Source of the DNA: Mytilus californianus
Taxonomy: Eukaryota
Length of the DNA: 64,000 nucleotides
Direction of reading: 5' to 3'
NCBI RefSeq assembly: GCF_021869535.1
Contig: NW_026262668.1
Span: forward strand, 36,022,001 to 36,086,000
Shown here: one piece after another, positions 2,030 to 60,230 of the stretch
Layout: every line of letters starts with the position of its first letter
Position numbering within the stretch: the first letter of the stretch is position 1
Position numbers and translations under genes: made by a program
Notes under the pieces: model-generated
What the model was told of the DNA's origin: nothing
Databases searched by the model: none
What the model saw: the letters and a program-made list of their open reading frames with translations, nothing else

Positions 2030-2385
2030 AATATAAGGAGATGTGGTACAAAATGTATGATTGCCAATTAGACAACTATCCATCAAAGACCAAAAGTCGA
2101 GATGTAAACAACAGCAAGGATATATAATAGTACTATGTTTAACAGAGGACACACCAAAACCGTAAAGTAAGATATAAAAGGTCCGGCATGTAAACAATTC
2201 AGAAGGGAAGACCAACGGCCTAATTGATGATAAACAAAATAAACGAAAACCAATTATGGCAAGACAACAACCGAAACCGTCACTAGATTACATGCTCCAG
2301 ACAATGGGAAAGGCACATAAAGAAAGTGGCGGAGCTAAACTAGTTTCTGAGTGCGCAACCCGTCCCCTTACATACGACAGTTGTG
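2030..2385 (-). mobile_element. Penelope-like 3' end with degenerate twister-like motif, inverted relative to the adjacent RT
   Basis: Minus strand 2380-2283 reads GGGGACGGG TTGCGCA...AAACTAGT TTAG CTCC GCC...GCCTTTCCCATTGTCTGG; same 3' terminus type as 3905-3950. Confidence 0.55.
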
Positions 2386-2427
2386 TGACAGCAAAACACA
2401 AAAACAAACTATAAAAATCAGTTTGAA

Positions 2428-3955
2428 AGAACTTGGCAGTTTTGACTTTTCAACTCTTTACCTTTCACTTCCACACAATCTTATCAAAAAAAAGTTTTCC
2501 TATTTAATTAAATGGTCGTTTGGTAAATCAGAATGGAAATATATTTGCTACAACTTAATTAAAACCTTTTCTCTAATGAGAAAGGTAAATATGCTAGATA
2601 TACTTACTGGAGGTGTGATAAGATTATAATTATGTACGTTTCGTCAATGAAGTTTATCGACAGGTTGAAGGTATTCCTATAGGCACCAATTGCGCCCCTT
2701 TAATAGCAGACTTGTTCCTGCACTGTTATGAATCATAGTTTATAACCAAACTCAGTAAAGACCCGTCTTAATTGCATTCAATTGATGAATTCAACAACAC
2801 TAATCGTTATCTTGATGATATTTTTTCGTTAAACAATCCAACATTTTCTAAATATACTGCCGAAATTTACCCGAAGGAACTTACTTTAAATAAATCAAAT
2901 ATAAACGGCAATAACTGTCTATTCCTAGATTTAGATATTTCAGTTTTACACGTGAAACTCTACACTAAAATTTACTGTTAATTTTCCTTTTTTGGACGGT
3001 GATGTTCCTTTGGAACCATCTTACGGTGTTTATATATCAGAACTCGTTCGCTGTTGTGGTGTTTTGGATTTCAATGAACGTAATCTATGTATTACTTGTA
3101 AATTATTAAGTAAGAATTTCGTTACCACAAATTACTTAAAATTTTTACTAAATTCTTCCATAGATATAAAGATTTGGTTTAGAAGTCTGGTTGTACGTGT
3201 AGAAGTCGTATCTCAAACGGTATAGCGCATCCTAATTTTTAAGGAGATGTTGTTTACCGAGCCCGGAATTTTAGATACAATCCGGGTAAACTTGTCGATC
3301 CTTTAAATAAACCTATTCTAAAAGGTTACCAATTCAACAATTAGATCCTTGAATATTATTTTTATTGGTATAAATATTGATTTTGTTATTTGTAAATTAA
3401 AATCAAACTAAATATTATTTCTATATACATATGTATATTCATTGCTCTACAATCTGTCGATACCTGTATCTTGGCATTGCACAAGGTCATTTTTTTTCAT
3501 TGACTGTTAATGGCGTCTTTATCTTAATCCATTGCATGTTGGATGTGTACTGATTGATATTTTAGTCTTAGATGCAATATTTTTTGTAGTACAGCAGTTG
3601 TTATTGGCTTTGAATTAGCTGTCAGTAACTGCAAGTACTCTCAGATCTGTACTTTTTGTTGTTTGGATGTATAAGAACCCTGCCACGTCCACTCTGTGTT
3701 TTCGTTAGATGTATTTCTGCTTTGTATCCATCTGATGAGTCAAGCCCTTTTCAACTAAATTTTATAGTTTGTTCTCATGTTGTTCTGTTACACCACTGTC
3801 CCAGGTTAGGGGGAGTGTTGGCGCCTTCAAACTGTTTTAACCCCGGCACATTGTATATGTTCCTGTTTTGACCTATAGTTGTAAGTTCCTGTTTCATTTG
3901 GTCTCTTGTGGAGAGTTGTTTCATTGGCAATTATACCAGATCTTCTTATTTTTAT
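2428..3955 (+). pseudogene. Decayed Penelope-like retroelement: RT remnant plus 3' UTR/pseudo-LTR
   Basis: Interrupted frames give SFDFSTLYLSLPH, YRQVEGIPIGTNCAPLIADLFLHCYE, RYLDDIFSLNN, IYPKELTLNK, FLDLDI, DGDVPLEPSYGVYISELVR. Stops and frameshifts; coding ends near 3410 with no endonuclease after it. Confidence 0.9.
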
Positions 3956-4687
3956 ATTGACTCATCAGATTGGTACGAATCATAAGAACATTGAAAGAGA
4001 GACACACAATACCGACCAATTAGTACTCCCAGTAACTTAAAACTAGTTCAAAGCCTTATTTTAACTGTCTACCGTAATTTATCAAACATGAATAAACAAA
4101 TACTAGTTTAGAATCACAAATTACAGATTTATAAAATGCAAAAGTTTATATTTAGTTATGTCGTAGTTATTATTTTAAAACGTTATATGAGAATAGAATG
4201 CGTGATTTGAATAAAAGGTATAGAACCCCTAATTCGGGCCCGGTCGGAAGGAACATACAAGAAAGTAGTACATATTTTAAACAAAATAGTTCCTATGCAT
4301 AGCTGTATCTTTGTCAATAGGTGCAATATTTGGGTAATTTTGGTATCAAATGAAAGCTTGGGGACTTGGGTTTACTGTAGAACTCTTGTTGAAAGATTCT
4401 TTTGAATAATAAAAAAAGTATATACAATTTTAATAGGAGGACATTTGCCCTGTTGTTCAGACCAGAAGTACTTTTTTTTTGTACTATATAACTTCCGGAA
4501 ACCAGTACGCTCTAATATGCAATTAAAAGTATGTTGAATTTTTCAACACAAGTCAGAATAGGGTATAGTTTTGACCTGATATGACTGCCACTTTATTTGA
4601 ACTTAAAACAAAGTAGCCATTAATGCTTGAAATTGCATAATTAACATAGAAAGAAATGGTGCTATGAATTAGTGGTTTTATACCTAT

Positions 4688-7630
4688 TACTGAAAGGCAT
4701 GTGAAATTCAAATTTTAGAAATCATACCCATTACTATGAAAATTGGTAACATTTGTTGTTAGTAATCATGTTACGTTAATTTTTGTTATGTCACAATTAT
4801 GCTGGTGTCAAGTTACAGACCTAAAATTGCTACAATAGGACAATTTAGCCTTTTTTGGTCATTTGGCATGCAGACAGTTACGATTTTACCTCAAGTTTAA
4901 ATTTTTGCAATATATAGGACTGAAACCAATGAAACATTATTATTATGACTGGTTTAGAGTATAAATATAGCTTTTGGTCAAATTATCTAATAAGTGTATA
5001 TTTTTTATTGGGTTTCTTAGTGTATCCTTTATTTAAAAGGAAATTGATGTATACTTATAAAGGAATTCCAAAATCTCACTTGAAATGCAATATTTAACCA
5101 GTTTAGCAAGTTGTCTAGGTGGGAGATACATGAATTGCTCTTGTTGACTTTTTTTACATTAAATTATGGTTTTTATCAAATCACTCTCCTTTTTCACATA
5201 GAAAAAAGGGGGACAAAATTATCTACTATATTTAATGTTTGGACCACTATAATTATATTCCAGGAACAACCTCTGATAAAAATAAGACATATATGTAAGC
5301 ACTTTGGTATTTCAGTAGGTATTAACAAAAAAGAACTAGTAAACATTGAAAAAAGTCTCATATCTGTCACTTTTAGTATCCATATGATGTTGTCTTAGTA
5401 AAACGCATATGTTACTACCAGTCCAATTTGAGCTTGAATTCAGTGATATAGTTTTTTGAAAAAAGCTTTATGTGTTTTTCTATGTTAGAAATAGACCATA
5501 GAATGAAATTAAGTAAAGCAAAAGTCAGTATAACAAGTTTTGTGCTGTTATACTGAAAGGCATGTGAAATTCAAATTTTAGAAATCATACCCATTACTAT
5601 GAAAATTGGTAACATTTGTTGTTAGAAATCATGTAACATTTTTTTTTATGTCTTAATTATGCTGGTGTCAAGTTACAGACCTCAAATTGCTACAATAGGA
5701 CAATTTAGCCTTTTTTGGTCATTTGGCATGCAGACAGTTAAGATTTTACCTCAAGTTTAAATTTTTGCAATATATAGGACTGAAATCAATGAACCATGAA
5801 TATTATGACTGGTTTAGAGTATAGATATAGCTTTTGGTCAAATTATCTAATGAGTGTTTATGTTTTATTGGGTTTCTTAGTGTATCCTTTATTTGAAAGG
5901 AAATTGATGTATACTTATCTAGGAATTCCAAAATCTCACTTGAAATGCAATATTTAACCAGTTTAGTAAGTTGTCTAGCTGGGAGATACATGAATTGCTC
6001 TTGTTGACTCAAATTTTTACATTAAAGTATGGTTTTTACCAAATCACTCTCCTTTTTCAACATGTAGAAAAAAGGGGGGGGGGGACAAAATTATCAATTA
6101 TATTTAATGTTTGGACCACTATAATTATATTCCAGGAACAACCTCTGATTAAAATAAGACATATAAGTAAGCATTTTGGTATTTGAGTAGATATTAACAA
6201 ACAAGAACTGGTAAACATTGAAAAAGTCTCATATCTGTCACTTTAAGTATCCATATGGTGTTTTCTTAATATAACGCATATGTTACTACCAGTCCAATTT
6301 GAGCTTGAATTCAGTGATATAGTTTTTTGAAAAAAAGCTTTATGTGTTTTTCTATGTTAGAAATAGACCATAGAATGAAATTAAGTAAAGCAGAAGTCAA
6401 TATAACAAGTTTGGTGCTGTTTTACTGAAAGGCATGTGAAATTCAAATTTTAGAAATCATACCCATTACTATGAAAATTGGTCACATTTGTTGTTAGTAA
6501 TCATGTTACATTACTTTTTTTATGTCACAATTATGCTGGTCTCAAGTTACAGCCCTAAAATTGCTATAATAGGACAATTTAGCCTTTTTTTGGTCATTTG
6601 GCATGCAGACAGTTAATATTTTACCTCAAGTTTAAATTTTTGCAATATATAGGACTGAAATCAATGAACCATGAATATTATGACTGGTTTAGAGTATAGA
6701 TATAGCTTTTGGTCAAATTATCTAATGAGTGTTTATGTTTTATTGGGTTTCTTAGTGTATCCTTTATTTGAAAGGAAATTGATGTATACTTATCTAGGAA
6801 TTCCAAAATCTCACTTGAAATGCAATATTTAACCAGTTTAGTAAGTTGTCTAGCTGGGAGATACATGAATTGCTCTTGTTGACTCAAATTTTTACATTAA
6901 AGTATGGTTTTTACCAAATCACTCTCCTTTTTCAACATGTAGAAAAAAGGGGGGGACAAAATTATCAATTATATTTAATGTTTGGACCACTATAATTATA
7001 TTCCAGGAACAACCTCTGATTAAAATAAGACATATAAGTAAGCATTTTGGTATTTGAGTAGATATTAACAAACAAGAACTGGTAAACATTGAAAAAGTCT
7101 CATATCTGTCACTTTAAGTATCCATATGGTGTTTTCTTAATATAACGCATATGTTACTACCAGTCCAATTTGAGCTTGAATTCAGTGATATAGTTTTTTG
7201 AAAAAAAGCTTTATGTGTTTTTCTATGTTAGAAATAGACCATAGAATGAAATTAAGTAAAGCAGAAGTCAATATAACAAGTTTGGTGCTGTTTTACTGAA
7301 AGGCATGTGAAATTCAAATTTTAGAAATCATACCCATTACTATGAAAATTGGTCACATTTGTTGTTAGTAATCATGTTACATTACTTTTTTTATGTCACA
7401 ATTATGCTGGTCTCAAGTTACAGCCCTAAAATTGCTATAATAGGACAATTTAGCCTTTTTTTGGTCATTTGGCATGCAGACAGTTAATATTTTACCTCAA
7501 GTTTATTTTTTTGCAATATATAGGACTAAAACCAATGAAACATTATTATTATGACTGGTTTAAAGTATAAATATAACTTTTGGTCAAATTATGTAATGAG
7601 TGTTTATGTTTTATTGGGGTTTCTTAGTGT
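4688..7630. repeat. Tandem array, ~870-bp unit, about 3.4 copies
   Basis: TACTGAAAGGCATGTGAAATTCAAAT starts at 4688, 5551, 6423 and 7294; identical ORF-track peptides at 5803 and 6678. Confidence 0.95.
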
Positions 7631-11160: not shown

Positions 11161-12786
11161 CATAAAATTGAGAATGGAAATGGGGAATGTGTCAAAGAGA
11201 CAACAACCCGACCATAGAGCAGACAACAGCCGAAGGCCACCAATGGGTCTTCAATGCAGCGAGAAACTCCCGCACCCGGAGGCGTCCTTCAGCTGGCCCC
11301 TAAACATATATGTATACTAGTTCAGTGATAATGGACGTCATACTAAACTCCAAATTATACACAAGAAACTAAAATTAAAAATGATACAAGATTAACAAAG
11401 GCCAGAGGCTCCTGACTTGGGACAGGCGCAAAAACATGTTTTTTGAGATCTCAACCCTCCCCCTATACCTCTAGCCAATGTAGAAAAAACAAACGTACAA
11501 CAGTACGCACAGTAAAACTCAGTTTAAGAGAAGTCCGAGTCCGATGTCAGAATATGAAACAAAAGAAAATAAACAAAATGACAATTATACATAAATAACA
11601 ACAGACTACTAGCAGTTACTGACATGCCAGCTCCAGACCTCAATTAAACTGATTGAAAGATTATGTCTTCATCATATGAATATCAGGCACAATCCCTCCT
11701 GTTAGGGGTTTAGTATTATACCGTCATAAAATATATGAGAAGAACACAACACGTGTCATGCCAACAACTGGTTTTAGAATAAATATGTTTAATTCCGATG
11801 CAAAGACCCTATAAGTGAATCAATATTAAAGCCAAAATATGCAATCTTTAATATCGTAACTATATCCCTTCTTAATAAGTCTGTTTAAAGGTTTTGTTAG
11901 CTTTTGAGGTGAATACTGGCATTTTTGTGCTTTGTAAAGAATATTACCATAAAAGATTGGATGTGAAATACCCGAACGTATAAGATGTCTGCATGTTGAG
12001 TTATATTTACGAATGATGTCCTTATACCGATGATAAAATTTAGTAAATGTTTTGACTAGTTTATGATATCGAAAACTCTGGTGTAATAATTTTTCAGTAA
12101 TATATAGGTTTCTCTCGCTAAAATCTAATACGTTGTTACATACAAGTGCGAATCGTACAAGTTGAGATATATAAACACCATAAGAAGGTGACAAGGGAAC
12201 GTCACCATCTAAAAATGGATAATTAACGATAGGAAATGAAAAATCATCTCTTTTATCATACATTTTTGTATTAAGCTTCCCGTTAATGATATAGATATCA
12301 AGATCGAGGAAAGGACAGTGGTCATTGTTAGTATTAGCTTTATTTAAAGTAAGTTCAACAGGATAAATTTCTTTAGTATACATACTGAAGTTGTCATTAT
12401 TGAGAGCCAATATATGATCCAAATATCTAAAAGTATTGTTGAATTTTTGTATCAGATGTTGTTTCGATGGGTCTTTGCTGATTTTAGTCATAAATTGTAA
12501 TTCATAACAATACAAAAACAGGTCCGCAATAAGTGGTGCACAGTTAGTCCCCATTGGAATTCCGATAACTTGAAGATATACGGAATCTCCAAAGCGAACA
12601 AAAATGTTATCAAGTAAAAATTCAAGGGCAGATATAGTATCAAAGCATGTCCAATTGACATAGCTCTTTTGTTTGTTGCTACTAAAAAATGACCTAAAAG
12701 AGTTTGAACATATGTATTCTCATTCCGACTTTTTAAATGCCCATCTAATTAGGTGTGTGAATTTTTTCTTAATAAGAATATGAGCA
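11161..12786 (-). mobile_element. 5'-truncated Penelope-like retroelement (RT plus 3' UTR/pseudo-LTR, family A)
   Basis: RT frame 12786-11826 followed by a 665-bp 3' region ending CATTCCCCATTTCCATTCTCAATTTTAT, which also occurs solo near 22055 and 59790. Confidence 0.92.
11826..12786 (-). pseudogene. Penelope-like reverse transcriptase, inactive
   Basis: One frame: HILIKKKFTHLIRWAFKKSE*EYICS...QVIGIPMGTNCAPLIADLFLYCYE...YLDH (catalytic DD changed to DH)...YDKRDDFSFPIVNYPFLDGDVP. One TGA at 12720-12722; stops after the thumb region. Confidence 0.92.
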
Positions 12787-14614
12787 GTTTGTTATTATTG
12801 ATCAAACGATTCATTCGAAATATTGGATTCAATAGTTCGACATATAATCTCAGCACAAATTTTGGTTTGAGACGAAGTTACATGAAGAGCTATTTACGAT
12901 TTCACTTTAGTGAAAACGACATGAAATTCACTAGTGGCTTTGAACAGATAAGCGAAAGGGAATATGACTTATAGTTTGTAACTTAAATAAAAAGCACCCT
13001 GAACTATGTTAGATGAAACATGATACATCTCTACATGTTCAAATATTTTAATGGTTTCCTAGTTGTAGGCCTCTATGATCAGTCGACTTTTTATTCAACA
13101 TAGGAAACAGATGACGAGCGAAAGCTAACATTGAATGATTTTTTCTACTCACTCACAAAACCAATAAAACTATAGCACGAATTGCCAAATGACCTTAACG
13201 AAAAATATCATGGTCAGCTCTGAAAACATTTGACCAACATATTTTTACCTTCAACACATCTTTGAATCAAACAAGTACTTAGTACACGTGATACCTCACT
13301 TTAATAAGTATATGTGAACGAAGGATAATAGCTGAAGTGTAAAGAAAACTGTTAGAAATTAATTTAACACCACAACAGTTTAAAGAAATTATTGAATGAC
13401 TCTGCCTGTAAAATTTATCACAGCTCAACAGTTTTACACCTCCACTAAGCTGATATAATAAGTCACAATTTTTAAGTTCGTCAGTACGAATTCGAATTGA
13501 TCGATTTTTTTTCACGTGTCATTGAATAAAACCTTATTTTCGTTTTCTTTTTTCATTTTCTTTTCACTCGATTTTGATATTATTGAAATTTAATCTTATA
13601 CGGCTAAAACCAGTAAACAATAAGATCTTATTTCAATGCGATGCAGGATATTCTTTACTTATTAGAGCATCCGACACACACTGGATTTTGATTAGAGTAA
13701 GTTAAGTACAAAGATTTAGTTTTAGTGTTCAATACTAATCCAACTCTTCTTTTTTTCGTTGCTATTTTGTCCAGTGTAATTCATTATGCATTCCCCTGTA
13801 ATTGTTATAAAATATTTTTTCTTACAAAACCCAGATTTGTAAAAATGTTTAAATGTTTTATCGTCTTTCGACTGTTAATTGTCTATTCCTTTTCTAAAAC
13901 GTTTGAGTTGTGATTAGTTTTACAGTTAAAGTCTTTTAATAATTTTTTTAAACTGTTGAAGTGCAAAATGCATTTTTTACAGTTTTTTACCTTTTGTTAC
14001 ACATTACCAAATGATCTTTCGTTCACATATACTTATTAAAGTGAGGTACACCAAAAAGTTAATTTTATCGCGTGTACTAAGTATTTGTTTGGAATTCAAA
14101 CACGTGTTAAATGTTTTCAGAGCTGACCATGATAGTTTGCGTAAAGGTCATTGAACAATTTCGCGTGCTGTAGCTTTACCGGTTGCGTGAATGTGTAGAA
14201 AATTAACTTTAATATAAACTAAAGTTTCAAAATTTGACTTGACTTGATCTTTTCACTTGTTTTCAAACACTTCATTCTTGCATCATGTTCCCAATAGCCT
14301 TTTCTCCAAACACATACAATTTTGCACGCTTGAGATAGTTCATAAACAATGGTTACAAACAAACACGTTCGACATTAGAGAAAAATGTCAAAACATGTAA
14401 AACTTGAGGATTTTTGAAAGGATTCATTACCGTTTAAGGAATGTTGAATTGACTTTTAGATGTTTTTCCCATTTTGCAGCTACTATTGCAATTTATAAGA
14501 CACATTTTCAAGAAGCTCACAGAAATCTATCAAAGACACTTATTTCGCCCTAAGAAGAAGACAAACAATCGAAATGTTACACAATATCAAACAATGGTTA
14601 TAAAACAAATCCAA

Positions 14615-14770
14615 TCCTGACTTGGTACAGGCATTTTCCAAAGAAAATGGTTGGTCAATCCTGGTTTTATAACTATCCTAACCTCCCACTTGTATGACAG
14701 TTGTTTATAGCTCCGTTATATTGACAAAATTACGTGAACAACCCAAACAGACATAATAGGTTGATGTGGC
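14615..14770 (-). mobile_element. Family C Penelope-like 3' end with degenerate twister-like motif
   Basis: Minus strand CTGTCATAC-AA-GTGG-GAGGT...CCATTTTCT..GAAAAT-G-CCTG-TACCAAG-T-CAGG; homologous to 42446-42543. Confidence 0.7.
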
Positions 14771-18567: not shown

Positions 18568-19080
18568 ATTGAGTTTCAAACATTTCAGGAATATTAGTTC
18601 CAGAGTTATGCGACTAAATACTAATTTGATTTGAGTAAGTCTCAACGAGAGCATTGTACATTGAAACACACATTAATATTAAATTATTAATAGAGCTTCG
18701 GCTTAAAGATAAATTGTAAAATAACGGTATCATATAATACGTTATCATATTAATATCAGTTAACTTTTCAAAATACCTAAAACCGTTAACAGGTTTTATC
18801 AAAAAAGACACTATAAGAGACCACATCCTGTAACCACCATCATCTGACTTCTCTAAAAGACAAACAATAACGATCAATACATGGTCCAGAAAGTCTAACT
18901 TGGTGCAGGTACATAATGTAGTGGCTTATCACCAGTTTTACGTGCGCACAAACCCAAACCTCCCATATGTCTGTCGTGACCATATGTCGTAAAAGTATAA
19001 CACTTGATAAAAAAAAATACGGTGTTCAGCTACCAGGTGAATGACTACTATCTTGAACAAGGAAAGAAAATTATTTGGAT

Positions 19081-21406: not shown

Positions 21407-21999
21407 CAACAATGAGAAAAACCCACACCATATAGTCGGCTATAAAAGGCCTCGACATGAAACATACGAAACAATTCAATTGAGAAAACTAACGGCCTAG
21501 TTTATAACAAAACAATTTACGAAAAACAAATAAGACAGACATGAACCAACGACAAACACTGAACTACAGGCTCCTGACTTGGGACAGTTTTATTAAGTGT
21601 TATTTTCAAATTATTTTCATGAAGTAATATTTATTGTACATTGTTGTATTTGGCATGAAATAAATCATCACGTCCGTATCTAAATTTTTGCAAAGTCGGA
21701 AATAGACACGTTGGAAAAAATACTTTTGCAAGTAATTCAATGGTCTATCTAATCGATCCTTTACACGATAAATTGAAAGAAACCACATAAAGTGTTTACC
21801 AAAATTCGTAAATGCACTTAGAAGACTCAAATGGTGGTGTTATGTAATATTTTCTTATATATTGAGTGCTATTATAAATGCATGTATAAAGAAACTAGAA
21901 TCTTAAATTTGGTAAAATAAATAATGAGCTTTAGAATAAATCATAATCTCAAATAGTATAGCCAGTGTTAAAAAATCCAACAAGATAAGTTCAGTTTGA

Positions 22000-22388
22000 A
22001 CCGTTTTGAGTTTTACTGTGCGTATTGCTGTGTGTCTGTTTATTATTCCACATTGGCTAGAGGTATAGGGGGAGGATTGAGATCTCACAAAACATGTTTA
22101 ACCCCGTCGCATTTTTGTGACTGTCCCAAGTCAGGAACCTCTGGCCTTTGTTAGTCTTGTATGTTTTTTTTTTAATTTTGGTTCATTTATATGTTTCGGA
22201 GTTGAGTGGGACGTCCATTTTCGCTGAATTAGTATACATTATTGTTTATGGGCCAGCTGAAGCCCGCCTCTGGGTGCGGGATTTTCTTGCTGTGTTGAAG
22301 ACCCACTGGTGGCCTTGGGCTGTTTTCTACTCTTTGGTCGGGTTGTTGTCTCTTTGACACATTCCCCGTTTCCATTCTCAATCTTAAT
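22000..22388 (+). mobile_element. Solo family A Penelope-like 3' end containing a twister-like motif
   Basis: Reverse-complement homolog of 11161-11520 and 59790-60230. Confidence 0.88.
22055..22146 (+). ncRNA. Twister ribozyme-like motif, type P5 (family A), three substitutions
   Basis: P5 GGCTAGAGGT/ACCTCTGGCC, P2 GGGG/CCCC, GAGG, TAA at 22099-22101, P4 loop TCCCAAG. Confidence 0.75.
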
Positions 22389-23480: not shown

Positions 23481-24145
23481 CAGTCGCTTTGGGATGGTAA
23501 CCTTTGGATACCTATTTTTTAGCATTGCACAAGGTCGTGCTTTTTCAGACAGTTTATGAGATCTTTACGCAATTGACTTCTATTTCAGACTTGAAAACAT
23601 GGATAATTCATTAGTTGAAATTGGGCTTAGAACTATCTTTCTGTAACTTGGAGTATTCTTAGATCAGTACTTTATGTCTTGTAATTTTTTTTAGTCTGTA
23701 AATATAAAATAAGGAGATGTGGGATGATTGCTAAAACACAACTATCCATCAGATTTCAAGTGGCGTGGTTTGTAGACTGTCACAATATAGGTAATCATCA
23801 ACAATGAGCTAAACCCACACTGTATAGCCAGCCATAAAACGGTTTTTCCTAATATTGTGCTGTCTTGTTACACCAATGTTCCAATTTAGGAGAGTGTTGA
23901 ATTCTCACAAACGAGTTTAACCCCTACACATTGTGTGTCCCCTTGGTATTCTCTGTCTCTGTAGGAACTGCCAAATATATCATAAAAAACCTTCAAGACG
24001 ATTTAATAACAGACCTCGACTATATCACATTTCATCGGATATAAATTGAATTAGGAAACATATTAATAAATGTTATTTCCTTAATAACATATATTTATAT
24101 AGTCATTCATTGTCCTTAAACTTGGCAAGTTCATCTAAAGTATCA

Positions 24146-25139: not shown

Positions 25140-25905
25140 TTCCGGTCATTCATTCTGTCGATACCTATATTTTGGCATTGCAAAAGATCATGTTTTTCTC
25201 TGATTGTTCAGGCGCGGATCCAGTCATTTGGAAAGAGGGGGCTACCAACCCCCGGAACACCATGAAACGTTCACATAATTAAAATAATCGTAAAAAGGGG
25301 GGTTCGAACCCAAGAACAACCCCCTGGATCCGCTAATGCTGTTTATTACGTCTCTACACTGAATTCATTGGATGTGTACTGATTGATATTTTAGTCTTAG
25401 AAACATGAGTTGTTATTGTGTTTTAAACTAGTTTTCAGCAACTGTGAGTACTCTCAGACCGTATATCTAAATTCTTTTTGTTAGATTATTTTGTGTGCTT
25501 TGTGTCGATCCGATGAGTCAATTAATTTTCAACTGATTCTTATAGTTTGTTCTTATGTTGTGCTGTTAAACCACTGTCCCGGGTTAGGGGGCGCCCGCAA
25601 ACATATTTACCTCCCTCACATTCTGTATGTGTCTTTCCCAAATCAGGAGCCTGTGATTCAGTGGTTATCGGTTTGTTGCTGTATATCATATTGGTGTTTT
25701 CGGTTAATAGTTTTGTACATAATTCAGGCCGTTAGTATTCTCGCTTGAATTGCTTTGAATTTGTCATGTAGGGGACTTTTATAGCTTTCTATGCGGTATA
25801 GGTTTTACTCATTGTTGAAGGCCGTACTGTGACCTATAGTTGGTCTCTTGTGGGAAAATGTCTCAATGGACATCGTACCACGCATTCTTAAATTTATATT
25901 TTTAC
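25140..25905 (+). mobile_element. Penelope-like 3' UTR/pseudo-LTR (homolog of 3430-3955) with degenerate twister motif at 25571-25664
   Basis: Colinear with 3440-3950; P5 CCACTG/CAGTGG and CCCAAATCAGGAGCCTG remain. Confidence 0.8.
25209..25338. mobile_element. Small MITE nested in the Penelope-like 3' UTR
   Basis: Inverted termini GCGGATCCAG/CTGGATCCGC; absent from the homologous position near 3500. Confidence 0.7.
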
Positions 25906-36010: not shown

Positions 36011-36978
36011 TATACCGACGATAAATCGGAATGTTATGTTAATTGCTTTTTTTTTTCTTTGACTATATTATCCTTAATTGATTATTCAAATAATCCGAAT
36101 GGATAAGCGTAAAAAACCCTGATCGGTCAATGAAGAATACAAATTGCCAAAGGAACGTAAATAGGAAGTCTCACTATTTGCCTGATTTCTGAAAAGAAAA
36201 TTAACGGAAAGTGTATTGGAGTTATCATGGAAAAAAGGAACGCTCTTGATATTCTTTTCACATAACATCTTAATTCAGGAACACCATTAAGGCAATTTTT
36301 GTTGTTGTCTTTTTTGTCAATATATAAAGATGAAGGGTTTATGAAAATCATAAATCAAAGGAGACAGACAGACAGACAACAAAGTGGCTAAAAGAAAAAA
36401 GTAAAAGAAAAAATAAAAGGTTCAGAAAGACGTAGCAGAAAAAAAATAATTGTGTAATCTTTTAACTTCTGAAAACCAGTTGATTTCGTATATGTTTGAA
36501 TGTTGTTTTTTTTAATTGTTTGAGAGGTGTGTCGGGAGTGTATAATTTTCCTCAATATCATAAGTAAAAATTACAAATGTTTATTCCAAACTCTACATAT
36601 TAATGCTTATGCTAAAAGGAAATCTGCAGTAAAACCAATTTTCTACCAAAAGTCAATACTGTTCTGTTATGTAGGCTCTTTTTGGTTTGATTATCAATTT
36701 TTTAATAGCTTTAGCTTCCCTCATTTGTTTCCTATGAAATGTATTCTAGAACACGTGAAGTGGTCACTGAGAAAGGTATAAAATATTTAGAAAATTTATT
36801 TCAAGGATCTGATGCATATAAGTTTTTCGTTGAGCTAATGCACGCATAATATAGACTCGAAATGATCCCGTTTAAGTTTATTTTATCATAAAAGTCGTAT
36901 GTACATATGGTACTGTTATTTCATCGATTGTGTCTTTTTAATTTGACTGAGTGTGGAGCATGGCGGTTGACGCATACG

Positions 36979-37145
36979 AGGTTTAATCCACCATTTTCTA
37001 CATAAGGAAATGCCTGTACCAAGTCAGGAATATGACAGTTGTTTTCAATTCGTTTGATGTGTTTGAGCTTTTGATTTTGCCATTTGATATGGGACTTTCC
37101 GATTTTAATTTTCCTTGGAGTTCGGTATTTTTGTTATTTTACTTC
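36979..37145 (+). mobile_element. Family C 3' end beginning just upstream of the predicted twister cleavage site
   Basis: AGGTTTAATCCACCATTTTCT...GCCTGTACCAAGTCAGGAATATGACAG; homologous to 42484-42650. Confidence 0.85.
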
Positions 37146-42269: not shown

Positions 42270-42655
42270 AGGATGTTAAATTTGATGTATGCCTTTTTGT
42301 GCTTCTTTGTTACATTTGTTTGTTTTTATAGTGATTAAGATGATAACACAATGTTGACTGCTGTACCCCTATTTTTGACATTTTTACCTATTGTGTCTGT
42401 TTGTTTGTTCACGCATCGTTGTCAATATAATGGAATTTGATGCGACTGTCATACAAGTGAGAGGTTTAGCTAGCTATAAAACCAGGTTCAATCCACCATT
42501 TTCTACAAAAGAAAATGCCTGCACCAAGTCAGGAGTATGACAGTTGTTATCCATTCGTTTGATGTGTTTGAGCTATTGATTTTGCCATTTGATTAGGGAC
42601 TTTCCTTTTTGAATTTTCCTCGGAGTTCAGTATTTTTGTGATTTTACTTTTTGAT
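42270..42655 (+). mobile_element. Family C Penelope-like 3' end
   Basis: Longest copy of the family seen at 14615, 36979 and 58823. Confidence 0.85.
42446..42543 (+). ncRNA. Twister ribozyme-like motif, type P5 (family C)
   Basis: Perfect 9-bp P5 CTGTCATAC/GTATGACAG, GAGGT, CAA at 42489-42491, P3 ATTTTCT/AGAAAAT, P4 CCTG/CAGG. P2 is weak and one loop U is changed to C. Confidence 0.65.
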
Positions 42656-43910: not shown

Positions 43911-44121
43911 GTTTGTAAAATTATGTTATAAATTTTAGACTTTTAAACAGAACTTAATAAACGGGATTGCAATTTGCCGTAACATAGTTGACAGGAAGAC
44001 CTGTGGCTATCAAAATACGTTTCAAGAATATCACATTCATACCCCATATGTATGGGAAAAGGAATCATGGTGATGATTCCTTATTTTAAATCAGTAAGGT
44101 TACTGTTTTACCACGCTGATT

Positions 44122-44640
44122 TAGATATAAGAAGATGTGGTATGACTGCCAATGAGACAACTCTCCATCCAAGTCAAAATTTATAAAAGTAGACCATTAT
44201 AGGTCAAAGTACGGTCTTCAACACGGAGCTTTGGCTCACACCTAGCAGCAAGCTATAAAGGGCCCCAAAAATGACTAGTGTAAAACCATTCAAACGGGAA
44301 AACCAACGGTCTAATCTATATAAAAAACGAGAAACGAGAAACACTTATGAACCACATCAACAAACGACAACGACTGAACATCAGATTCCTAACTTAGGAC
44401 AGGTGCAAACAATTGCAGCGGGTTTGAACGTTTTAATGGTACCAAACCTTCACCCTTATCTGAAACAATAGTGTAACATCACAACATAGAAAGACACACT
44501 ATAAAATATCAATTGAAATGGATTTACTCATTCAAAAGACATATTAACAACAGTGAACATACACTGAACAAATAAATTTGATCTATGATACAATGTAAAT
44601 ACAAAATAAATAAACTAAGGGAAGAAAAATTAAAGTAACA
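44122..44640 (-). mobile_element. Family D Penelope-like 3' end
   Basis: Close paralog at 50020-50346; shares the GTCTCATTGGCA.TCATACCACATCTTC terminus. Confidence 0.85.
44381..44463 (-). ncRNA. Twister ribozyme-like motif, type P5 (family D), core apparently intact
   Basis: Minus strand TCAGAT-AA-GGGT-GAAGG-TTTGGTACCATTAAAACGTT-CAA-ACCC-GCT-GCAATTGTTTGC-A-CCTG-TCCTAAG-T-TAGG-A-ATCTGA; P2, P3, P4, P5, T1 and T2 can all pair. Confidence 0.8.
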
Positions 44641-44789
44641 TGATTTAGCCTTTATTTCATATCAATATGTAAAAAGGTAGTATAAGCGAAATGACATACC
44701 ACTGAATTGAAATGATTAAGTCTCAGTGGTAAACAGCAAATTGTCAAAATCAGCGTTATAATGAATGAGTAGTACAAAGACAGAGAAAG

Positions 44790-48109: not shown

Positions 48110-48494
48110 GTTTTGTGATTTTAGTTAAATTGTTACGTTAAAAAAGTTTTCGTTTCACAAAGCGCTGTGGAAAGTCTGCGAATTTCTAAAAATATACTAT
48201 TCAAAACGGTAGCTGTTTGGTTAGTCAACCAGTCGCATATTCTATATAGATGACACTAAGCTAAACGGTCGTTCTGTGCATGGGCCACGCTCTCTCAGAT
48301 TAATAAAAAGACAAGAGTGACCTACCGATTTGTATACTGGTTTTCCCGAATTAATTCACATCAAGTTTTTTTATGACTCAGATAAGGTACAAACTATATG
48401 GTACTGTGCACAATACCAGTTAAGTATCTTTGTAGGGATGAGTTCTTTACAAAATAATGATATCGTTATCAAAACTGAGATAAATCTCAAGCGA

Positions 48495-48692
48495 AATGTA
48501 CGACGGGTGCCAGATGTGGAACAGAATCTGCTTACCCTTCCGGAGCTCCTGAGATCATCCCCGGTTTTTGGTGGGGTTCGTGTTGCTCAGTCTTTAGTTT
48601 TTTATGTTGTGTTTTATGTACTGCTGTTTTTGTTGGTCTTTTTATTTTTTTGCCATGGCGTTGTCAGTTTATTTTCGACTTATGAGTTTGAA
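48495..48692 (+). mobile_element. Family B 3' end
   Basis: Contains the full structured core at 48501-48590; a second partial copy lies at 48975-49138. Confidence 0.85.
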
Positions 48693-49713
48693 TAAATTAG
48701 TAATTTCATGAAAATTGATGAAAGATTATTTATAATGCATGACCAACAATATTGTTATATTTGTCTATGAACTATTTTTTTTATTATTCTTTCTATTATT
48801 ATATTTGATAGACGAAGATATGTCATATCAAAGCAGTCTCAAATTTGTTGAGTTCCATGAAATTGGTAATATCACAGCGAGGGACAGAGTCGACATTTCT
48901 GAAGAAGATTTATGTTGTATGTACATTTCGAAATTAAGATTTGGTGTTTTAATATATGGTATAACATTGTCATCAGTTTTTGGTGGGGTTCGTGTTGCTC
49001 AGTCTTTAGTTTTCTATGTTGTGTTTTGGGTACTGTTGTTTGTCTGTTTGTCTGTTTCTTTTTTAGCCATAGCGTTGTTAGTTTATTTTCGACTTATGAG
49101 TTTGAATGTTCCTTTGGTATCTTTCGCCTCTCTTTTAAAAGAAATATTTTGGACACAGTATTAAAATGGCACAAAGGTTTAGTAGATAGATCATCTTCTA
49201 TAAATGGGTTTAAATGAGCTGTCAATTATATTAATTATATTATGCCTAGATTACTTTTTTTGAACTATTGTTTGAGCCGTGATGGTATTTTAGAACTGTA
49301 ATTATGAGCTGAATAAGTACTGATAGGCGTTATGATATTTTCTTTTTTAATTTTGTGTTCTCCAAAGTATTACATTTGTAGAATTCCAGGCTTTGGGTTT
49401 CTATCATGCTTGATAAAGGTAATTCCAGAGACATTTGTTGTGCTCGCGAAAATTATATCAAACTCCTATTTTTTTTTTATATTTTTTAGGTTATTTTTTG
49501 TAATAACAAAAAAAAAAACAATTTATTAGAGACATTGTTACACAGATCTAAACAGCAGACCACACACACAAATTAAACTTAGACAATGATAATTCATACA
49601 CAACAGATTAAATCAAGTAGGCATATCCTGCCCCTCATGATGTAAATGAAAAAAAAACAAAAAAGATATGAATTAGCAATATTTACTAGTATTTAAATTT
49701 TATTCCTCGCTAG

Positions 49714-49889: not shown

Positions 49890-50510
49890 CACCATATAAA
49901 GATAAAAAGATGTGGTTTTATTGCAAACATAACAACTCCCCACCAAAGACCAATTGACGTTGACAACTATAATAGGTCACCGTACGGCCTCCAACAATGG
50001 GCAAAACCAATACCGCATATTATAGATATAAGAAGATGTCAATGAGATAACTCTCCATCCAAGTCAAAATTTATAAAAGAAAACCATTATAGGCCACAGT
50101 ACGGTCTTCAACACGGAGCCTGGGCTCACACCGAACAGTAAGCTATAAAGAGCCCCCAAAATTACTAGTGTAAAACCATTCAAACGGGAAAAACAACGGT
50201 CTAATCTATATAAAAAACGAGAAACGAGAATCACTTATGAACCACATCAACAAACGACAACTACTCAACATCAGAATCCTGACTTAGGACAGGTGCAAAC
50301 AAATGAAGCGGGTTTAAACGTTTTAATGGTACCAAACCTTCATCCTTTTTATGAAAACCATGAAAAGACAAAAAATGACAAATGTAACTCAATTCAAACG
50401 AGAAGACTAACGGCCTGTTTACTGGTCAAACAATAAACGGAAAACAAATATGATATACAGCAACAAACGACAACCACTGAATTACAGGCTCCTGACTTGG
50501 GCCAGGCATT
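49890..50510 (-). mobile_element. Cluster of truncated Penelope-like 3' ends (family D copy 50020-50346; partial twister motifs at 50271-50346 and 50473-50510)
   Basis: Homology to 44122-44460 and 21065-21587. Confidence 0.8.
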
Positions 50511-50984
50511 CTCAGCATTAATCTGTCTCGAAATGATAAAATGAAAATTATTTGTGAGGGAACTTTTAAATTGTTTTCCATGCATAGAAGTAGTAAGTAT
50601 TCGATGGTATAGTGAGAGCAACAATCCATTAATTTGAAAATGTATGATTTAATTGTCATTTGAATAAAAAGAATATCCCATATTCTAAAATTGTCCCTCT
50701 TTGATAATAGGAAATGCAAGCTCTCTACAAATTTAATAAAATAATACCATTTTTTAAAACATAATGCATTAATGTTGTATATTGATTGTTTCCATTAAGA
50801 AGAGAAGAAAGATAATGTATCCTTTATAGTCATCTATTTCAAGCATGAAATCAAAAGCAAATAACATCTTTAGAATGAATTAAAAATACAAAAAATATCG
50901 AAAACCTTAAAAAAGAAGGTAAGCCAAAGTAAGATATAAGAGTAGTAGCATCGGCTTTGAAAACGATTCTACGATTCTGCGATT

Positions 50985-51250
50985 CTGTGTTGTCATAACT
51001 ATAAATTAACTGTTTATAAAACTTTAAATTTTTAAAATACTAAGGCTTTTCTACCTCAGGAATAGATTACCCTAGCTGTATTTGGCAAAACTTTTAGGAA
51101 ATTTTGGTCCTCAATGCTCTTCAAATTCATACTTTATTTGGCCTTTTTAACTTTTTTTGATTCGAGCGTCACTGATGAGTCTTTTGTAGACGAAACGCGC
51201 GTCTGACGCAAATACAAAATTTCAATCCTGGTATCTCAGATGAGTTTATC
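50985..51250 (+). mobile_element. Hammerhead retrozyme-like repeat fragment
   Basis: Reverse-complement homolog of 28150-28522. Confidence 0.85.
51166..51209 (+). ncRNA. Minimal type I hammerhead ribozyme, intact core
   Basis: Stem I GCGTCA/TGACGC, CTGATGA, stem II GTC/GAC, GAAA, palindromic stem III ACGCGCGT, GTC cleavage triplet at 51201-51203. Confidence 0.92.
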
Positions 51251-57739: not shown

Positions 57740-58814
57740 ATGACATTACAGAATCATTTATTTATAAACCATTTCTTGATTTGACTCTAGAAGTGCAATT
57801 GCATACGAGTACTTCCCTTCCAATAAAGCGTCAATTATAAGTAGCTCATGTTCATCTACCTTATTCCAGGTTGACACGCATATCATATTTAATTTGCTTA
57901 AACAAAGGCTATAAAACTTATGTAAGACAAGTCGAGTGAAGCTAAAAAAAAAAGTAGTTTATTAAGATACCATCTCATTTATAATTACTGATAACCGCAA
58001 CTTGACGTTGCAGCTAACCACTGATAACGAAGGTACTCGTATCCAAATATATGTTGAGTCAAATTAGCAATTTTTTTTATTCATGGCAAGGTTTATTGAA
58101 TGCTGTGTTCTTTCACGTTTTTTGTTTTTGTTTTGTTTTTTTGTGGTAGACACGTTAAAAGCTTGGTTTTGAATTGTAAATGATTTATTTTATGAATGGT
58201 TGTATATATGAGATATTGACTGAACTGTAGTATAATTTCAATTACCATTCTCATTATTTTTTTAAAAACTGAAAAGAATATTCAGGCTTTACATAATTCA
58301 GAGAAAAGATGGAATAGTTAAAAACTTGACAAATTAAGTTTATTATTTTCTTTAATATATAACATATATATAAAAAAAAACTCTTTGGATAAAAATCCAT
58401 CAATTTTTTTTTTCAAGTGCTAAACATTGTGTGTACTTTAATGTTAATTTATAGATATTGCTTTACATTAGAGGTAGTTAATTGAAAATGAGGAAATATA
58501 TGAAAAATTAAAGATATTTCAAATGAAACAGCAAATGATTGATTTATAAAGTACACACATTTACCGAATTATTACTAGATTTTGATTTAGCACGAACATT
58601 ACAACGAATGCAACTAGTAGAGCAGGTACTGCTTACCTCTCCGGCGTATCCCTGTGTTTCGTGGGATTCATGTAGTCCAATCTAAAGTTTCTGAGTGCAA
58701 TTATTTGTGAATTGTTGATTTTCTATCCGTCATTTTTTTTTAAGGCATATATTGTTTTCAATGACTTATGGTTATTGATTGACCCCTTGATAACTGTTCC
58801 TCTTTCTGTAGACC

Positions 58815-59012
58815 CTTAATAAGAGGTTTAGCTAGCTATAAAACCAGGTTTAATCAACCATTTTCTACATAAGGAAATGCCTGTACCAAATCAGGAATAT
58901 GACAGTTGTTTTCCATTCGTTTGATGTGTTTGAGCTTTTGATTTTGCCATTTGATAAGAGATTTCCCGTTTTGAATTTTCCTTAGAGTTCTGTATTTTTG
59001 TTATTTTACATT
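58815..59012 (+). mobile_element. Family C 3' end, truncated at the start of the twister core
   Basis: GAGGTTTAGCTAGCTATAAAACCAGGTTTAATC...; the 5' P5 strand is missing. Confidence 0.85.
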
Positions 59013-59789: not shown

Positions 59790-60230
59790 TAATAAAATTG
59801 AGAATGGAATTGGGGAATGTGTCAAAGAGACAACAACCCGAACAAAGAGCAGAAAACAGCCGAAGGCCACCAATGGGTCTTCAACACAGCGAGAAAATCC
59901 CGCACCCAGAGGCGGGCTACAGTTGGCCTCTAAACAAAAATACTAGTTCAGTGAAAATGGACTTCACACTAAACTCCGAAACATATAAATGAACTAAAAT
60001 TAAAAAAAAAAACATACAAGACTAACAAAGGCCAGAGGCTACTGACTTGGGACAGGCGCAAAAATGCGGCGGGTTAAACATGTTTTGTGAGATCTCAACC
60101 CTCCCTATATACCTCTAGCCAATGTAGAATAAACAAACACACAGCAATACGCACAGTAAAACTCAGTTTAAAAGAAGCCCGACTCCGATGTCAGAAGAGG
60201 TAACAGAGGAAACTAAGCAAAATGACAATG
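59790..60230 (-). mobile_element. Solo family A 3' end with degenerate twister motif at 60030-60120
   Basis: Colinear with 11161-11580. Confidence 0.88.

Follow-up and report, generated by a model that had tools for sequence, protein, structure and literature searches.

Penelope-like elements are a major class of retrotransposons whose mechanism is poorly understood. Hammerhead ribozymes are located in the pseudo-long terminal repeats of canonical Penelope-like elements, according to Cervera & de la Pena 2014 (cited in PMC6765202). It is debated whether these ribozymes are essential or passengers, and the apparent lack of a ribozyme in the very successful Naiad clade has been taken as an argument for "passenger" (PMC8557442). 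Craig et al. 2021 described the features of the Naiads, including the selenoprotein-coding Naiads of clams, and stated that they have no canonical hammerheads, as an earlier note on the present DNA also says; the word "twister" is absent from their paper (PMC8557442). Here we analyzed a stretch of 64,000 nt from Mytilus californianus (contig NW_026262668.1, positions 36,022,001 to 36,086,000), referred to below as the window, in which that note had flagged a twister ribozyme at the 3' end of a Penelope-like element. It seems that the flagged stretch is probably a type-P5, that is, circularly permuted, twister fold in a Naiad-clade element, some 300 nt before its 3' end, and we infer that the RNA may cleave itself.

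For the twister ribozyme of type P5, the reference is reportedly Roth et al. 2014. Published rules for the twister core comprise a 4-bp helix P2 with an A.G pair added to it, an invariably placed, conserved dinucleotide GC that forms the pseudoknot T2 with two bases of loop L4, a helix P4 lengthened by two pairs (G-C and U.A), a pseudoknot T1 of three Watson-Crick pairs, and an A.A pair (PMC5408937). Type-P1 twisters have been predicted in bivalves without a link to transposons, and papers naming both the twister ribozyme and Penelope-like elements treat the two separately. We found no paper that links twister to Naiads, in line with the earlier note, which knew of no such description; the literature covered lacks most subscription journals, so this absence is not proof.

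The candidate twister fold of the window copy

From 44463 to 44381, the minus strand reads UCAGAU/AA/GGGU/GAAGG/20-nt insert/C|AA/ACCC/GC/UGCAA-UUG-UUGCA/CCUG/UCCUAAGU/UAGG/A/AUCUGA, letter for letter as previously noted, and the scissile bond is predicted between C44426 and A44425 of this strand. The position-by-position mapping onto the twister core that had been proposed agrees with the published rules (PMC5408937) as well as with the consensus line of the Rfam model Twister-P5 (RF02684) when that model is aligned end to end with sibling copies. The segments are as follows, where R1 denotes a home-made model of the motif that we built in the present analysis.

44122..44642, minus strand: 3' terminal region of a putative Naiad-type Penelope-like element, a 521-bp 5'-truncated copy, with the 3' end ...CTTCTTATATCTA at 44122
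44370..44472, minus strand: complete candidate twister-fold domain, the outer half of P5 (which has two parts) included; R1 gives 131.4 bits over 44364-44477
44467..44472, minus strand: outer P5, 3' strand ACUAUU; partner 44370-44375, with one mismatch in the window copy
44458..44463, minus strand: inner P5, 3' strand UCAGAU, 6 bp with 44381-44386
44452..44455, minus strand: P2, 3' strand GGGU, partner ACCC at 44420-44423; the junction AA before it is at 44456-44457
44447..44451, minus strand: L1, 3' strand GAAGG, with the candidate catalytic guanine as its first G; AGG pairs with CCU of L4 as T1
44427..44446, minus strand: stand-in for P1, consisting of UU, the palindrome UGGUACCA (44437-44444), UUAA and the palindrome AACGUU (44427-44432)
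44424..44426, minus strand: L1, 5' strand C|AA, with the predicted cut at 44426/44425; both A's are invariant in alignment A1 (see below)
44420..44423, minus strand: P2, 5' strand ACCC, 4 bp with GGGU
44418..44419, minus strand: L2 dinucleotide GC, pseudoknot T2 with GU at the end of L4
44404..44417, minus strand: P3 hairpin UGCAA-UUG-UUGCA, 5 pairs, with double changes at all 5 among relatives
44388..44403, minus strand: P4 CCUG/UAGG enclosing L4 UCCUAAGU (44392-44399); the L4 core is near-invariant
44381..44386, minus strand: inner P5, 5' strand AUCUGA, preceded by the junction A at 44387
44370..44375, minus strand: outer P5, 5' strand AGUCGU (family consensus AGUAGU)
44122..44369, minus strand: terminal tail 3' of the predicted ribozyme, the last ~60 nt of which are common to many families

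The window copy conforms to the published rules apart from two wobbles, a G.U in T2 and a G.U at the P4 extension. Its L4 agrees with the twister consensus UCCCAAGC at 6 of 8 letters, and both differences fall at paired positions. The first G of GAAGG is kept, and the A that stands in place of G is matched by a U in L4. In the P4 extension, the letters of the U.A pair are kept and the near-invariant G-C is replaced by G.U. The closing pair of P4, G.U in the window copy, is G-C in about half of the genomic copies and about 90% of the RNA reads (44391 A>G); the base at -1, C in the window copy, is U in most copies and nearly all RNA reads. The locus had been called "apparently intact", which overstates its condition somewhat, since P1 is missing and a G.U stands at the near-invariant G-C.

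We then compared the motif with chance expectation. The window contains 6 occurrences of the L4 nonamer GTCCYAAGY where 0.94 would be expected, a number reached by 0 of 100 shuffles. The composite descriptor AAGG-N16-26-AANNNNGC-N8-22-GTCCYAAGY has two matches (44392-44450 and 50282-50340) against 0.00 expected from 100 shuffles of the window. Therefore, given the excess of both the descriptor and the L4 word over shuffles, the match is more than chance.

Compensatory changes maintain the fold in diverged Naiad lineages

A piece of a reverse transcriptase (RT) remnant in the window (2956-3222) served as the survey query and uncovered a very large family, from which the 2.7 kb downstream of 40 copies, 61-83% identical in the RT piece, were sampled. 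The same permuted twister motif is present in about 30 of these 40 copies, 0.7-1.2 kb behind the RT. Group A reads GGGG-GAGGG ... UAA-CCCC-GC-CACAU..AUGUG-CCUG-UCCCAAGU-CAGG, and group B, which includes the flagged copy, reads GGGU-GAAGG ... UAA-ACCC-GC-UGCAA..UUGCA-CCUG-UCCUAAGU-(C/U)AGG. A third family, represented in the window at 42437-42553 (plus strand, 40.4 bits with R1), combines GAGGU with UACCAAGU (T1 A-U) and has AC for GC (T2 A-U); its helices are a 3-bp P2 with a bulge, an 8-bp P3 and a different 10-bp P5.

The two partners of T1 switch together across the copies, GAAGG occurring with UCCUAAGU and GAGGG with UCCCAAGU. Among families, C-G is exchanged for U-A at one T1 pair and for A-U at another; the former exchange, already pointed out in the window copy by the earlier note, separates two large groups of copies. 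The first pair of P2 is C-G, A-U or U-A depending on the family, and the P2 pairs are 89-94% standard with double changes in both alignments described below. P3 is found among relatives as CACAU...AUGUG, as CGCA...UGCG or as an 8-bp AU-rich stem, the outer P5 is ACUAUU/AGUAGU in one group and CCACUG/CAGUGG in the other, and the inner P5 appears in relatives as UCAGGU/ACCUGA, CAGGU/GCCUG or GGCUAGAGGU/GCCUCUGGCC. Nearly all letters of P3 and of both P5 halves differ between these forms, with pairing retained.

In alignment A1 (MAFFT, 51 rows), 92.7% of the cells are paired, compared with 32-43% in slid controls, and covariation is 0.262 versus 0.153 in shuffles, a value that 0 of 500 shuffles reach. 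Alignment A2 (built with the model, 62 distinct rows) gives 88.6% paired cells against 36-46% in slid controls and a covariation of 0.269 versus 0.147; of its 30 pairs, 24 have changes in both partners, and on each of five measures it is equalled by 0 of 500 shuffles. Because T1 and T2 were left out of the model that built A2, the support for the pseudoknots is not a fitting effect: the three T1 pairs are GC:33 and AU:10, GC:49, and GC:36 and UA:4, and the two T2 pairs are GU:47 and AU:9, and CG:45 and UG:6. The core letters fixed across lineages are the A after the predicted scissile bond, the G of GARGG and the U..AAG of L4. The covariation among genomic copies that the earlier note had suggested examining thus supports every helix and both pseudoknots over shuffles in A1 and A2, and we conclude that compensatory changes have preserved P2, P3, P4, the two-part P5, T1 and T2 across many diverged Naiad lineages of this genome.

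These results bear directly on a chance look-alike, in which twister-like words happened to lie in a repeat amplified by transposition and their conservation would reflect shared ancestry. The window copy does belong to a very young family, whose copies are 96-98% identical so that conservation there is uninformative, and Rfam is silent on this copy. However, the composite descriptor is unexpected by chance, families that are only 61-83% identical in the RT piece have double changes in all helices and in T1 and T2 and yet retain the fold, to a degree that neither shuffled nor slid controls approach, and the independently curated Twister-P5 model picks a sibling as its best family match. This well-kept sibling (L067:717-790, outside the window), in which all pairs are standard, has Twister-P5 as its best Rfam family with 21.2 bits (E = 0.0097 for the searched stretch), and two siblings inside the window, 22068-22135 (plus strand) and 60041-60106 (minus strand), align with Twister-P5 end to end at 10.6-10.9 bits. 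A chance origin is consequently highly improbable in our view.

The host element and its relatives

The window copy aligns with 92-93% identity to the last ~520 bp of longer elements (L045, at 5181-5697, L043 and L046). Measured against one long copy, 29 other copies have a common 3' end and scattered 5' starts, and the sequence 5' of the break point of the window copy at 44642 is common to other copies. Therefore, the shared upstream sequence and the scattered 5' ends identify the window copy as a 5'-truncated insertion. The motif is on the sense strand of a ~4-kb element, ~300 nt from the 3' end. In L045, the open reading frame (ORF) ends at ~4611, the twister occupies 5346-5455 and the element ends near 5700; the ORF of both L045 and L046 stops ~570 nt before the terminal unit (5181-5697 in L045).

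No ORF is attached to the window copy, and no RT lies beside the motif within the window. The endonuclease and the RT are known only from longer relatives elsewhere in the genome, so the earlier statement that an ORF ends after the RT at this very locus does not apply to the truncated window copy. The nearest RT remnant in the window (2351-3341) was considered as the partner of the flagged motif and rejected, since it belongs to another copy. This remnant, on the plus strand and with the motifs ..FDFSTLY.., ..RYLDDI.. and ..FPFLDGDVP..SYGVYIS.., nevertheless links RT and twister inside the window: ~450 nt later there is a degenerate twister (3787-3907, plus strand; GAGUG, P4/L4 deleted), followed by the common tail.

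Upstream of the RT, a GIY-YIG-like module (..CGI.YVGxTG..R..EH.., FWIKRLQTAYPLGLN) can be read in the translations of L045 and L046, and their ORF pieces also include a KR-rich stretch, x-D-C followed by ..GHVxTGDL.., GPKY, VPTDKAANN (the DKA form) and the reverse transcriptase. Pfam called no GIY-YIG in the decayed ORF pieces, the module being read from the translations, and its RVT_1 match to them is weak, 16.8 bits versus a cut-off of 29.6 bits. A scan of four long copies at the Rfam gathering thresholds detected no hammerhead; it found only a selenocysteine insertion sequence (SECIS) element, L046:1205-1262 (minus strand, 37.8 bits, above threshold), which lies in the 3' untranslated region (UTR) between the ORF end and the twister. 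In two copies (L045, oriented position 2721; L046, oriented position 2739), an in-frame TGA occupies the first Cys of CxC (TGA-D-C). The TGA together with the SECIS suggests a selenocysteine-coding Naiad like the published clam Naiads; alternatively, the TGA may be an inherited nonsense mutation. The GIY-YIG N-terminus, the DKA and GPKY motifs, the RT, the SECIS and the lack of a hammerhead in full-length relatives support the assignment of the host to the Naiad-type Penelope-like elements, which agrees with what had been noted for this 3' end.

A change of frame near ..GFRYHKLxK|xFxKFFHRYKDL.., required for reading on into the C-terminal part of the protein, is shared by all copies examined, namely L043, L044 and L045 (ORF ends ..SFIDTKI) and the window at ~3100-3230, and may represent a common defect, a programmed frameshift or a small intron. 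Outside the twister-bearing element, the window also contains a type I hammerhead (51166-51209, plus strand, 34.8 bits versus the Rfam gathering score of 34), presumably part of a canonical Penelope-like element or retrozyme.

The position within the element also addresses a 5'-processing twister of an RTE-type long interspersed nuclear element or short interspersed nuclear element (SINE), as in Perere-3 of Schistosoma. RTE-clade elements that begin with twister variants at the 5' end have been described (PMC8501958; PMC7761336), and the 521-bp repeat, whose similarity to 29 loci ends at 44642, at first looked like a discrete SINE-like or retrozyme-like unit. We rejected such a unit because other copies continue upstream and are variably truncated. 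In longer copies the unit is continuous with the upstream GIY-YIG and RT ORF, and it lies 3' of that ORF; moreover, the copies are variably truncated at the 5' end with a common 3' end, and insertions do not begin at the cut site. An RTE-type origin is, on these grounds, extremely improbable.

The family is abundant. When the 1.65-Gb genome was searched with 121 nt around the motif, a first look listed 783 candidates, of which the 40 scored are 96-100% identical, and a 20-mer spanning the site has 6,453 exact genomic copies. R1 has 16 matches in the window, about one motif per 4 kb, and a first look genome-wide gave ~725,000 rough candidates, the top 150 of which all score at least 125 bits. 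Matches to the terminal tail likewise recur within the window. Besides the flagged copy and the third-family copy, the following fourteen R1 matches range from 92 down to 20 bits and are mostly decayed.

50254-50366, minus strand, R1 match
25565-25671, plus strand, R1 match
22045-22157, plus strand, R1 match
60019-60130, minus strand, R1 match
3787-3907, plus strand, R1 match
2274-2389, minus strand, R1 match
11389-11486, minus strand, R1 match
50467-50599, minus strand, R1 match
21549-21650, minus strand, R1 match
18864-18982, minus strand, R1 match
23867-23953, plus strand, R1 match
36941-37045, plus strand, R1 match
14599-14709, minus strand, R1 match
58800-58912, plus strand, R1 match

Sampled copies also contain same-strand pairs of twisters of different families, 400-730 nt apart (L033:2112-2226 and 2514-2627, plus strand; L043:3364-3480 and 4092-4208, plus strand); cutting by both members of such a pair, if it occurs, would set free a small RNA whose ends could be ligated, in the manner of a retrozyme. 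Elsewhere in the window, at 48330-49217 (plus strand), overlapping ORFs repeat a hydrophobic peptide-like motif (..VFGGVRVAQSLVFYVVF..CHGVVSLFSTYEFE..), probably another dispersed repeat.

Predicted self-cleavage and comparison with known systems

In the mechanism we propose, the element transcript would fold with P2-T2-P3 and P4-T1 stacked and the long P5 closing the structure, and the RNA would cut itself between N-1 (U; C in the window copy) and A44425. The guanine of GARGG and the adenine would act as in other twisters, and cleavage would leave a 2',3'-cyclic phosphate on one product and a 5'-OH on the other. The role would be the one proposed for hammerheads in other Penelope-like elements, that is, the trimming of read-through or tandem transcripts to unit length, which possibly yields ligatable or circular templates.

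The region in which P1 would be expected has the same layout in every family: UU, then a perfect palindrome of 6-10 nt, then a linker rich in A, and lastly another palindrome, whose end falls immediately before the predicted cut. The first palindrome takes the forms UGGUACCA, GGCGCC, GGGAUCCC, UGAGCGCUCA, UGAGAUCUCA and AGCUAGCU, and the second takes the forms AACGUU, AACAUGUU and AACUAGUU. Their summed length is 12.1 nt versus 5.1 nt in shuffles (shuffle maximum, 7.0), and the letters vary between families while palindromy is kept. A search for an intramolecular P1 returned only weak alternatives (e.g., GUUU/AAAC) that compete with T1 and are not adjacent to the site. P1 is dispensable for twister according to large-scale assays (PMC11662667) and earlier mutational work (PMC8501958), and imperfections of loops and stems were tolerated in the large-scale assays (PMC11662667); therefore, the missing P1 does not exclude activity. 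We speculate that the two palindromes make cutting conditional, for example on the pairing of two copies; in a simple dimer, we did not obtain canonical P1 geometry from them.

Several observations weigh against a cleaving twister. Complementary strands are absent between GARGG and N|AA, so there is no P1 helix. T2 contains a G.U in all families of the genome, and the window copy has another G.U in the P4 extension, where G-C is near-invariant. In cmscan, the window copy is not reported by any Rfam twister model, either at the gathering threshold or at E<=10, with 351 nt or 101 nt as input. The Twister-P5 scores of its siblings (10.6-21.2 bits) are under the gathering score of 37.6 bits, and the best copy of its own subgroup has only a mis-registered twister-P1 match of 12.9 bits. 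The search with Rfam twister models that the earlier note had called for thus gave weak matches for relatives and none for the window copy; the Twister-P5 alignments lose bits where the P1 hairpin of the model is skipped and the P3 hairpin is scored as an insertion. In addition, the minimum-free-energy fold is no better than that of shuffles (z = -1.08), and the covariation derives from a few deep splits in one genome, with about a dozen rather than hundreds of independent compensatory events.

Transcripts and insertions also bear on this question. We compared four runs of raw RNA sequencing reads of the same species label with the window copy. The repeat is transcribed in both read orientations, with a depth over the twister of ~20-160; the reads span the site, and in none of the four runs do read ends pile up at 44425/44426. 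The bin at the site dips shallowly; relative to the neighbouring bins, its depth is 0.54-0.60 for one read orientation and 0.71-0.93 for the opposite one, and mismatches of the window copy to the family cluster there. The expressed copies mostly have U at -1 and C at the closing pair of P4. Over the last ~60 nt of the element (window 44112-44183; ..GGAGAGUUGUCUCAUUGGCA.UCAUACCACAUCUUC..), the RNA depth is 10-30 times that over the twister, with many variant letters, which is a tail module common to many repeat families. The flanks of reads that run past the 3' end of the element are A/T-rich, compatible with insertion into (TA)n.

If cleaved 3' fragments were reverse transcribed, insertions starting at the cut should be seen. 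In whole-genome word counts, the 23-mer starting at +1 occurs 1,700 times, 1,650 times when a Y at -1 is added, and 1,567 times with two more T's. The step at the site thus amounts to a loss of 2.9%, compared with ~2.5% per neighbouring position, and 5' ends are not concentrated at the cut. The lack of an insertion hot spot means that the templates of nearly all genomic copies were intact across the site, and cleavage therefore cannot be constitutive. Cleavage, if any, would be conditional, reversible or restricted to the processing of upstream or tandem copies, and the RNA and insertion data are neutral to slightly negative for constitutive cutting.

The same data would suit a structural RNA with the shape of a twister whose cutting activity was lost or never existed, for instance, a conserved 3'-UTR fold serving RT recognition, RNA stability or packaging, with the core letters kept for folding. 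The RNA reads carry no cleavage signature, insertions are not in excess at the predicted cut and all of them have sequence on both sides of the site, P1 is absent, wobbles stand where other twisters have G-C, and the Rfam scores are under threshold. However, the fixed letters are precisely those of the catalytic center and active site (A+1, the G of GARGG and L4), while the helices vary freely, and agreement with a ribozyme core at each position would not be required of a mere scaffold. A proven ribozyme occupies the equivalent place in other Penelope-like clades (PMC8557442, PMC6765202), and large-scale assays found P1 dispensable and imperfections tolerated (PMC11662667). Taken together, we regard a non-cutting fold as rather unlikely and favor a self-cleaving twister.

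A broader proposal can be made only tentatively, and we would sooner doubt it than adopt it: self-cleavage would be obligatory for all endonuclease-bearing Penelope-like elements, and Naiads would have swapped the hammerhead for a P1-less permuted twister, whose palindromes would make cutting dependent on two copies (tandem or dimer). If true, two-copy dependence would explain the partial tandems of elements and the survival of uncut templates, and the copies in this one genome, thousands to hundreds of thousands in number, would make up a natural twister population far larger than any other known. If an unrelated self-cleaving fold sits at the same place in Naiads, the balance in the debate on ribozymes of Penelope-like elements would shift to "essential", and the question would become testable. 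It would also add a second biological setting for twister in animals and a natural P1-less form with palindromes. Curated covariance models, moreover, miss this family, which may have hundreds of thousands of members in a single genome.

Compared with twister type P5 (RF02684), the Naiad motif has the same order, P2'-GARGG-[P1]-N|AA-P2-GC-[P3]-P4-L4-P4', opened in P5, as well as the 4-bp P2, the T2 between GC and L4, the three-base T1 and the U..AAG core of L4 (PMC5408937). It differs in having two palindromes for P1, an L4 ending in U that makes T2 a G.U (A-U in one family), a long two-part P5 of ~12 bp, Rfam scores of 0-21 bits versus the 37.6-bit threshold, and a location in an animal retrotransposon at very high copy number. 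With the Penelope-like hammerheads it shares the retroelement class, the general place near the 3' end or terminal repeat and the presumed job of trimming tandem or read-through transcripts, but it is an unrelated ribozyme class, in a clade described without canonical hammerheads (PMC8557442). Minimal hammerhead variants cleave as dimers according to Lunse et al. 2017 (cited in PMC6765202), and the palindrome at the closing stem of the Naiad motif is reminiscent of these dimer-dependent forms.

The twisters of the RTE element Perere-3 of Schistosoma mansoni are likewise retrotransposon-embedded folds with many copies and a P1 that is weak or comes from the flanks (PMC8501958). In contrast, the Perere-3 ribozyme sets the 5' end, and insertions start at the cut beside the target-site duplication (PMC8501958), whereas the Naiad motif follows the ORF, and insertions continue across the site. 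Like the published Naiads, the present elements have an N-terminal GIY-YIG, DKA, GxKY and an ORF ending after the RT, and, like those of bivalve-type genomes including the clam selenoprotein Naiads, they have a very high copy number, an in-frame TGA and a 3'-UTR SECIS (PMC8557442). Unlike the published description, which is without a ribozyme (PMC8557442), the elements analyzed here carry a twister fold as a constant part of their 3' region.

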